Shown: positions 1,834 to 4,800, numbered from the stretch's first letter. The stretch: 64,000 nt of DNA from Octopus bimaculoides (GCF_001194135.2 NC_068982.1:27651640-27715639); one strand, 5' to 3'. Notes: generated by a model not told the origin, from the letters alone. A program made the numbers and translations.

Positions 1834-4800
1834 GTAAGTTGAGTTACTTCAATGTGTCAAATCCTTATTTTTCTTATATTGTAACATATTTATAATCAAC
1901 TGGATTTTACTCTATCTTTATTTACAACTAGATTCAGTAACTATAAATATTAAACTGTAAAGCTTTAAGATAAATCTCAGATCAGTTATTTGCATTGGTC
2001 TGTGCGGGTATTAACTTGCATATTCTCTGCATAGTCGGTTTTTCCTTTGTGTATTCTTTTAAAAAAAAAAAAAAACTGGCCTATTTTACAGATCAGAAGA
2101 GTCCATTAAAGCAGTGCCTATCTCTGTTTCCTTAACACTAATCTAATGATAAATATGTTTTTCTTGGATTGTAACATTAGTTTATCTGGGTAACTTTCAC
2201 TAAGGGGGTTAGCACACAGTCTTATCTAAGTGAACTAAGATACTTTGAATAAAAATATCCTGCCCACTAGAAATAAAGAATTCTAATACCTGTGATGAAT
2301 TTGATCTTATAACATAGGAGCTGACTGGGCCATTTAACATCACAATAAATTTATTATAGATTAACACATTCTTTGCTTATATTTTAATAAAACAAATAAA
2401 CTTTATATTTTAGTTTTAAAAAGGTTTTCAAACTTTGAGGTCATGGTGACTTTTGTTAGGTTTTAACCGCTTTCTTACTAATGAATATTTGTAAATTAGA
2501 TAGTATAGATTCTGTGTGATTATCTCTCTTTTTTGTATCTCTTTTTACTCAGTATTTTTTCTTGCTTTTTTTTTTTTTTTTGATGTCAAATATAATTTGT
2601 ATTCAAAAATGCATCCACCAATTTGCACTAAATATTTTGCAAAACATTGAGCAGTAACCTTCAAATTTGGATTATATTTTGTGTTTTACATAAATTCTGT
2701 TTAAAACTATTCAACTCTCAGATTCTCTTTTTCTGAAATTTCAAAGACAAAATTCTTTTAAGGTTTTTTTCATAAATTTTGGAAGATGTTTTTATTTCTT
2801 TCCTTCTTGATCAGTATTTATACACAGAGTCAAGAATAATAATAATGATAATTTTTTCAGATCTTTAACTTCAGCTTTAGGGATGAAATTTTTTTTTTTT
2901 ATATCTACATCTACACTGTTTCAATTGGTTTGGTCTGTGATCATCACCAGATGCCTCACTCTAGGATGTGTACATAGAAACAAAAGTTTCTAATTTGAAT
3001 CCAGTTTAAATTTAACATCTCTATTCATTTTCTAAATATTATAAGCAAGAATCAACTCTGATATTTTTCTATTCCTTGCTTTAGTTTCATAACCCAATTT
3101 TGATCCTCTCTCTTACTAGGTTACAATGGGATAGCCCTGTGACTCCACCCAGCTTAAGGGAAGAGGACTACAACTTACATTCGGGCTGTGTACAATACTT
3201 TGTTGCAGGTATAAATCTGTTTGTTTTAATTGTTCTTCTAGGTCATTTGAGGACACTCTGTCTCTGATGCGGTCTGCGTACAGTGCGGAGTTCCCTATGC
3301 CTCAAGGCTGTGTTAAGTTCTACATAGCAGGTAATACAACTGCAATTAATGCCTGCAACTGTCTACTGGTGTTACTTCAACTCATTGCACACAATTCTCA
3401 TTATGTATCTGCTCTCTTTAGATTTCTTAATTGGTTTAAAGAAGCACATCAAAGTCTTTTTAACCTTTCACTTTTGGAATTGAAATCGCAATGATCTGTG
3501 TTTTATAATTGGGTTTGCATGTATCCCATTTATAAAATATCTCCTTTGAATTAAAATAAAAACAACAGCATTTACATCACATGGCATTGAAGAATAATTC
3601 TATTTTAATTATATCAGCAAATATTCATGTTTGAAAAAATTATAAAATATACAGTAGGAGATTTTAAGCCAGTAATTTTTTATCCTTGATTTTACAAAAC
3701 CAAAAAGCAACAATGATTTTGAAATGAATTACAGCTCATTAATAGCTGTGATTTTAAAACTACTTTAATATTTAAATTTCAATTACAATTGATCTTTAAA
3801 CCAATTAAATGTTTGTATTACTTTGTAAAATATTGCTGCATATTTTACATTGGTTATATTAGAAATGTTGTATTATTGGAATATAATTCAGTTTTAATGT
3901 GTGTTTGCCTGAACATTAGCTAAACTATGTAAATTCATCTTGGCTATAATGGTAAACCATTTATTCTGCCTCTGCAGTTACATTTTCACTCAGTCTGCTT
4001 CCATCATTGCTTACCTACTTCCCCCTATCTGATAAATTAAAGCTGTTATCAATATTATAGCCCTTATTTTTAGTATTTATTCATATTGAAATGAATTTTC
4101 GTCAATGATTTAAATCTCACATGTGATATCTTGCATGAATAAAAGAATCTTGACTCTAAACAGAACTAAAGTGGCTGTCAAGTTATTGATGAAGCAGGTA
4201 GTACGCTGTTGAGGTTAAAAGTTCAGCTAAAGCATGCAGGCATAACTAATTTGATAAGAAAGGGAATGCAACATCAGTGTAATGTAGTTGAAAACCATTA
4301 TTCCTTGGTAAGAGAAAGAAATGTAGTTTGAAACCTGTCCATAGGTTTGTTCTCTTTCATTTTTAAATTGTTGTTTCGAAAAGTATTATATTCTATTATT
4401 GTTTGTCTGTATATACATATGAGAGATGGATGTTGTATTTATAGGTGGTAGGTCTGTGAGTTTTGTATGATGGGGCTGGGGATGAGGAGCTTTTAACTTT
4501 GTTTGTACACATTTTAATCTGTGTGTTGTGGGAGAGGGGTCTGTTCCCTTGGAAATAAGAGTTACTTGTTCATGCCAAAGCAATTTTGAAAATAAGAACT
4601 GAACATTTACTGATGGTGAAACTCAACTCAATACTAAGAGCAGAGTAAAATTTATTTTAATATTACATTCAACTGGGTCTTGTAGTTTTGCTTAGTATTT
4701 TATTCAGCCACTGGATAAATCACTGTCAAGTGAAATTTAAAATCAGTGAGCTGGCAGAAACATTAGCGTGCCAAAGAAAATGCTTAGCAATATTTTTCTT

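Follow-up and report, generated by a model that had tools for sequence, protein, structure and literature searches.

Tandem exons of probable mutually exclusive use in the WDTC1 gene of Octopus and their counterparts in other invertebrates

Exons 2 and 3 of alpha-tropomyosin are an example of an exon pair governed by steric hindrance. In C. elegans, the steric pairs egl-15 5B/5A and let-2 9/10 are separated by 14 nt and 30 nt, respectively, and introns shorter than 40 nt, including those of 14-30 nt that separate such pairs, are never excised (Kuroyanagi et al. 2014, PMC4165533). For human clusters, a distance of less than 50 nt between donor and branch point is regarded as steric interference, and homologous mutually exclusive exons are recognised by adjacency, own splice sites, equal phase, similar length and homology (Hatje et al. 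2017, PMC5740500). Among the human clusters composed of exons of non-3n length, reads that join both exons are found in a minority of cases (PMC5740500).

In this work, we present an analysis of two adjacent 89-nt exons, A and B, located in a window of 64,000 nucleotides (the whole stretch of DNA that was analysed) from Octopus bimaculoides (NC_068982.1:27651640-27715639). The gene to which they belong is WDTC1, Drosophila adipose (adp), also called DCAF9, a substrate receptor of CRL4 (CUL4-DDB1) built of WD40 and TPR repeats. We consider it highly probable that A and B are mutually exclusive exons of Octopus WDTC1 originating from an old tandem duplication, that one of them is present in each mRNA, giving two 719-aa proteins which differ at residues 237-264, and that their exclusivity is most likely secured by a too-short intron together with frameshift and decay. 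All five of the features by which the human clusters are recognised are present in this pair.

Exon anatomy and annotated isoforms of WDTC1

The constitutive upstream exon of WDTC1 (1609..1833, + strand; …QFDLRTP…YDRRMLSCKSIKFPTDNGS) is an exact match to the Octopus WDTC1 proteins P0286 and P0403; its 3' end carries two bases of a split Arg codon and its donor, GTAAGT, begins at 1834. Exon A (3120..3208, + strand, 89 nt; AG at 3118-3119, GT at 3209-3210) encodes (R)LQWDSPVTPPSLREEDYNLHSGCVQYFVA(G) and is present in the annotated isoform X1. It is separated by an intron of 33 nt (3209..3241, + strand), composed of the GTATAA donor, a pyrimidine tract and AG, from exon B (3242..3330, + strand, 89 nt; AG at 3240-3241, GT at 3331-3332), which encodes (R)SFEDTLSLMRSAYSAEFPMPQGCVKFYIA(G) and is present in the annotated isoform X2. 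A pyrimidine tract and AG stand before each exon, each has its own donor (GTATAA for A, GTAATA for B), and both have the same phase and are stop-free in the phase set by the exon ending at 1833. The next constitutive exon (11091..11294, + strand; GHLPQKQMDYRKRYRTLASTYVTYSPDG…GIVK) encodes the following WD blade, and the remaining ones (13493-13661, 14228-14410, 15900-16135, 17001-17169, 18528-18720 and 21220-21429, all on the + strand and all with AG/GT) lead to the stop at 21427-21429.

The frame from 1833 to 11091 is maintained by A alone or by B alone, and in each case the product remains open up to that stop. By conceptual splicing, inclusion of A and B together shifts the frame to an early stop (…AGHLRTLCL-stop), as does omission of both (…SRPFTSETDGLP-stop), and retention of the 33-nt intron shifts the frame to a stop inside exon B; every non-exclusive combination stops within a few codons. 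The first-pass annotation of this DNA had proposed two open 89-nt exons of identical phase with their own AG/GT sites, each able to join 1833 to 11091 in frame, and its coordinates, lengths and peptides were all reproduced here. The small size of the A-B intron, only 33 nt, had been little stressed there.

An alternative 3'-terminal coding exon ((…S)AMVR-stop; 22317..22334, + strand) is reached from a donor (A/GTGAGC) at ~21398 inside the last exon. Use of this donor reproduces the annotated 714-aa isoforms, namely X3, which has exon A, and O. vulgaris CAI9718791, which has exon B, and the choice of the C-terminal end appears independent of the A/B choice.

The window contains Octopus WDTC1 without its first 161 codons (the N-terminal 161 residues are encoded upstream of the window), and the 558-aa products with A and B are exact substrings of P0286 and P0403, respectively. 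P0286 is isoform X1 with exon A (XP_014775311/2 of O. bimaculoides, XP_029654796 of O. sinensis, CAI9718792 of O. vulgaris), and P0403 is isoform X2 with exon B (XP_014775313 of O. bimaculoides, XP_029654802 of O. sinensis, CAI9718793 of O. vulgaris). Each is 719 aa long, and the 23 positions at which they differ all fall in residues 237-264. Compared with 120 listed matches, all of them WDTC1-named or unnamed, the window protein showed 49-96% identity. Both forms are also annotated in the cuttlefish Sepia (Acanthosepion) pharaonis, where CAE1324425 (A) and CAE1324423 (B) differ only in residues 236-263, and in the snail Gigantopelta aegis, where X2 (702 aa) has A and X1 (704 aa) has B; Argonauta hians is annotated with a B exon identical to that of octopus at 28/29 residues. 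Exactly one of the two exons is found in every annotated product of Octopus, Argonauta, Sepia and Gigantopelta, and no annotated protein of these genera has both or neither; the records are computational (pipeline) annotations coming from several independent projects. The idea of a tandem duplication giving two either/or isoforms, put forward on first inspection, is borne out by X1 and X2 in Octopus and by the pairs annotated in Sepia pharaonis and Gigantopelta aegis, and the B exon expected in related species is present and frame-intact in Sepia pharaonis, Argonauta hians and Gigantopelta aegis.

An intermediate statement that no B isoform was on record, derived from queries with a 173-aa product and with concatenated junction peptides, was overturned by the 558-aa query, which retrieved the Octopus and Sepia clusters. 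With a word index, short protein queries yield only few candidates, and the cephalopod matches missing from their results carry no weight.

Several other features were observed in the window. A dispersed repeat with a shared long open frame (…DALPNANHS·SVVGAFTCH…) occurs within a WDTC1 intron (15113-15622) and 22 kb downstream (37137-37493), the first copy containing a tandem array at 15246-15504 (114-bp unit x2.3, 93% match). Downstream of WDTC1, a 188-aa ORF at 28342-28908 (- strand) with a match to Pfam Transposase_1 (mariner-type partial DDE domain, E 3.6e-16) is a transposon remnant, and a 222-aa open frame at 51798-52466 (+ strand) with a match to Methyltransf_16 (lysine methyltransferase, E 2e-9) probably belongs, as a large exon, to a methyltransferase gene nearby. 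A run of N, i.e. an assembly gap, with poly-T/poly-A on its flanks lies at ~43390-43760.

Homology and age of the A and B classes

In register, the DNA of A and B is identical at 35/89 positions, compared with 22.5 +/- 4.1 for intronic windows of the gene (p ~0.002). The similarity of the last third, noticed already in the first-pass annotation, amounts to 18 matches in the 3' 29 nt (p ~2e-4). An HMM trained on 17 orthologous exons that occur as single copies in other animals, all pair members being kept out, was scored against all phase-compatible open AG..GT/GC segments at 1834-11090. Exon A obtained 43 bits (E 3.5e-12) and exon B 24 bits (E 3.7e-6), and no other segment of this interval, apart from overlapping variants of these two, was significant. 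The resemblance between A and B exceeds chance, and their scores point to an origin by exon duplication, the homology by which mutually exclusive exons are recognised.

Other invertebrate WDTC1 loci, mostly host contigs in metagenome assemblies, were scanned in the interval between the flanking exons. Pairs were found at five of them: L001 (86+92 nt, intron of 1143 nt), L004 (95+92 nt, intron of 45 nt), L014 (92+92 nt, intron of 468 nt), L053 (92+92 nt, intron of 253 nt) and L017 (an exon of 92 nt and a B exon with altered 5' half). The order is always A then B, the lengths are 3n+2 and AG/GT sites are present; the B exon of L001 is nearly identical to that of Gigantopelta aegis isoform X1. 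Two class HMMs were prepared, one from the upstream and one from the downstream exons, each time with the tested locus left out. All 6/6 upstream exons were assigned to class A and all 6/6 downstream exons to class B (12/12), with margins of 12-43 bits; octopus exon A scored 33.4 bits for class A and 20.3 for class B, and octopus exon B 29.6 bits for class B and 17.3 for class A. The signature of class A is …PW(D/E)·P·L·P····G·DY·LP, and that of class B is SPWER·NL(L/M)··L(F/Y)S·(D/E)(E/K)F·(L/M)P.

Two candidates were reinterpreted or set aside. In L004 the canonical exon had at first been taken to be the downstream one, which would have implied an independent duplication, and class HMMs built with more pairs gave A then B. 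The equally long isoforms X1 and X2 of Mytilus californianus, considered as a possible pair, are distinguished by just one residue, located elsewhere, and only one exon is present at the Mytilus coruscus locus. In L017 (3181-3299), the B exon retains its 3' half (…MQTLFSAEEFTLPQNAVNYYVAG) without the SPWERQNLL 5' part, and the nearest in-phase acceptor gives an exon of 119 nt; this exon may be in the course of remodelling or loss.

Most sampled genomes have one exon only at the A/B position. A single A-like exon is found in Haliotis, Patella, Lottia, Pomacea, Littorina, Biomphalaria, Aplysia, Lamellibrachia and Lineus, and a single B-like exon in oysters, scallops, unionids, venerids, the chiton Liolophura, Lingula and Tubulanus; the sequences in which the A/B alternative was seen were all of lophotrochozoan type. 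Two gastropod-like loci have A only: in L002 (261-429) only 83 nt separate it from the downstream exon, too little to accommodate B, and in L010 (4114-11670) the intron contains ORFs of 706-718 aa, probably of a mobile element. Both are consistent with a loss of B in most gastropods. In a venerid-like bivalve lineage, represented by L005 (8952-9007) and L006 (7435-7490), the matching exon has just 56 nt (ASPSEF·LPHGCVDYYIAG), which indicates that the loop part is dispensable in length and the strand is kept.

The sorting of all 12/12 exons into their classes indicates that the duplication is old, and one old duplication followed by differential loss would be the simplest reading of the sequences. 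A broader scenario can be put forward only tentatively, as possible but doubtful in its full extent. According to it, the A/B pair would be an ancient lophotrochozoan invention, predating the split of cephalopods and gastropods and probably that of brachiopods, nemerteans and annelids too, which was kept as an either/or switch in cephalopods, peltospirid snails and several further marine invertebrates, with B lost in most gastropods and A lost in bivalves and chitons. Through this switch, one WD-blade loop of the CRL4 receptor would alternate between a disordered form rich in proline and possibly open to phosphorylation (A) and an amphipathic helix (B), giving two partner or substrate specificities.

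The pairs could also have arisen by independent, recurrent duplications of a duplication-prone exon, and the single exon in most sampled genomes, the scattered occurrence of pair-bearing loci and the weak phylogenetic signal of ~30-codon exons would all agree with that, as would the N-terminal similarity of octopus B to L001 B, whose p is just 0.007 before multiple-test correction. We nevertheless regard such recurrence as unlikely, given that the leave-one-locus-out profiles place upstream exons in A and downstream exons in B without exception (12/12), that the A-then-B order is common to all six loci, and that single-exon lineages are cleanly A-like (most gastropods, Lamellibrachia) or B-like (oysters, scallops, unionids, chiton, Lingula), which fits differential loss after a single duplication.

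Probable exclusivity and use of the two exons

Two classical mechanisms may keep A and B apart. An intron of 33 nt would be too short for the spliceosome to assemble on the A donor and on the B branch site and acceptor at once, so that A would not be spliced to B. Since 89 nt equals 3n+2, double inclusion, double skipping and intron retention would all produce early stops and expose the mRNA to nonsense-mediated decay. Judging from the sequence, we infer that steric block and decay are the most likely enforcing mechanisms. The sole yUnAy-like branch site within the 33-nt intron, read from the sequence and putative, is TTAAT at 3226-3230, with its A at 3229, i.e. 21 nt from the A donor and 13 nt from exon B. 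The distance from donor to branch point is below the ~50 nt taken as the steric limit and the intron is of sub-minimal size, by limits established for human and C. elegans which may not be those of octopus.

As to RNA structure, the fold of 3080-3400 gave an unremarkable z of -1.35 for docking or selector elements in what is a weak test with one species, and no exon-proximal complementary elements were found in 1834-11090, where the inverted repeats are dispersed repeats situated far from the exons.

A short A-B intron is found in octopus (33 nt) and L004 (45 nt), as against 253-1143 nt in L001, L014 and L053; apart from L004, every one of the five other pairs has an intron of ordinary length. 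Since the short intron is absent from most other pairs, steric hindrance is neither conserved nor ancestral, and the short intron is a lineage-specific reinforcement.

Between octopus and cuttlefish, exon A is identical at 23/29 residues and exon B at 25/29, and the first 18 residues of B are unchanged. Over the whole 558-aa query, a decapodiform transcript (P0287) reaches 84% identity; set against this level, these values indicate purifying selection on both exons.

It could be argued that A and B are both used, but that the choice mainly tunes the level of WDTC1, mis-paired products with both exons or neither being made on purpose and degraded, with no two functional proteins involved. The early stop in each non-exclusive combination would serve such regulation, and exon-joining reads do occur in a minority of human clusters with non-3n exons (PMC5740500). 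However, the 33-nt intron should block the joining of A to B, the single-exon products are both full-length and conserved, and the identity of the B loop over 18 residues in octopus and cuttlefish points to selection on the protein, so we find this alternative very unlikely and retain two mutually exclusive exons, each serving its own protein.

The decapodiform Logan transcript assemblies in the protein collection, a set of six full-length ORFs of which five are represented on 51, 27, 13, 1 and 1 contigs, all carry A. This suggests, without proving it, that A is the major form, and B may be rare or tissue-restricted. That B is a decaying duplicate or pseudo-exon caught by homology-based gene predictors, with A alone really used, would agree with these assemblies and with the lack of a transcript-derived ORF with B among the results of short B-centred queries (to be disregarded, since such queries retrieve few candidates), but it is hardly credible for an exon that is intact in frame, in its two splice sites and in the family motif, is conserved at least as well as A (25/29 between octopus and cuttlefish, 28/29 between octopus and Argonauta), represents the annotated form in chiton, unionid mussels, Lingula and Tubulanus and lies downstream of A in five other loci, as a neutral relic would not persist so long.

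The swapped segment and comparison with known systems

The window product has the layout WD-TPR-WD, as in WDTC1 orthologues. The PDB holds no WDTC1 structure, and only a weak match to DCAF8 was usable for positioning; in this match the flanking exons align to successive blades (9u7t_B residues 378-406 and 433-459), with the A/B exon between them. AlphaFold was run on the window-encoded partial isoforms, which are devoid of the three N-terminal blades, and the models are of low overall confidence (mean pLDDT 59, pTM 0.35); the numbers given here refer to these partial products. In both isoforms the models contain three strands at 31-57, then the exon, with its last third as a strand at 99-102, and the next blade at 123-148. 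In isoform A residues 73-87 have pLDDT <50, and in isoform B residues 77-89 (FEDTLSLMRSAYS) are helical with pLDDT ~63.

On these partial models, the exon would comprise the loop after the third strand of one WD blade and the next beta-strand (…GCV-x-[YF][YF][VI]AG-HLP). They suggest that its last third is a conserved beta-strand kept in both versions, preceded by two thirds that seem to be disordered in A and helical in B. Loop A, acidic and rich in proline, is predicted to be disordered and has SP and TP motifs, and for loop B the prediction is a short amphipathic helix. Judged by the topology of WD40 proteins in general, the swapped segment would correspond to a c-d loop and would lie on the opposite side from the top surface that usually receives substrates. 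The initial suggestion of a swapped WD40 loop was roughly right, as the exon is positioned between two WD blades in the DCAF8 alignment, and in the partial models it encodes a loop plus one conserved beta-strand; the models of both isoforms have this strand (99-102) in common, with a loop of low confidence in A and a helix in B. Any functional or binding difference between the two isoforms is hypothetical.

WDTC1 is not mentioned in the main text of the human survey (PMC5740500), and in the searchable literature we found no paper that pairs WDTC1 with mutually exclusive exons or treats its isoforms as such, and nothing relevant on mutually exclusive exons in cephalopods. The earlier remark that no description was known holds for searchable papers; it does not hold for databases, where both isoforms are public RefSeq/GenBank entries, and isoforms are already available for three Octopus species, a cuttlefish and a snail. 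This is a real feature of an ordinary textbook kind, already known at the database level. New with respect to the annotation and the searched papers are the recognition of the WDTC1 isoforms as a mutually exclusive pair with a 33-nt spacer predicted to be unspliceable, and of A and B classes conserved and differentially lost in molluscs and other lophotrochozoans. Of modest evolutionary interest, and so far unreported, are the age of these classes and their lineage-specific loss. In practical terms the gain is small: the pair confirms that real alternative exons can be recognised from raw sequence. If the two loops do bind different partners, which is a hypothesis, the pair would offer a natural handle on the target choice of the WDTC1 (adipose) ligase receptor.

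The window encodes the Octopus orthologue of WDTC1/adp, and the named molluscan, arthropod, echinoderm and lamprey matches show 49-68% identity to its product. Vertebrates, arthropods and most other sampled animals differ from octopus in having a single exon or segment at the A/B position, e.g. …LPDGAVQYYVAG in lamprey. The steric pairs, i.e. alpha-tropomyosin 2/3, egl-15 and let-2, have a sub-spliceable intron like that of octopus (33 nt) and L004 (45 nt); unlike in those pairs, the short A-B intron is not kept across pair-bearing species, and the octopus branch point is putative. With respect to the described clusters of mutually exclusive exons in human (Hatje et al. 2017, PMC5740500) and C. 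elegans (Kuroyanagi et al. 2014, PMC4165533), the difference lies in the kind of evidence, as exclusivity in octopus is judged from annotation and sequence logic and not from junction counts. In common with these clusters, the octopus exons are homologous neighbours of equal length and the same phase with their own splice sites, their non-3n length makes joint inclusion shift the frame, and the encoded peptides end within a folded domain, so that one exon is required.
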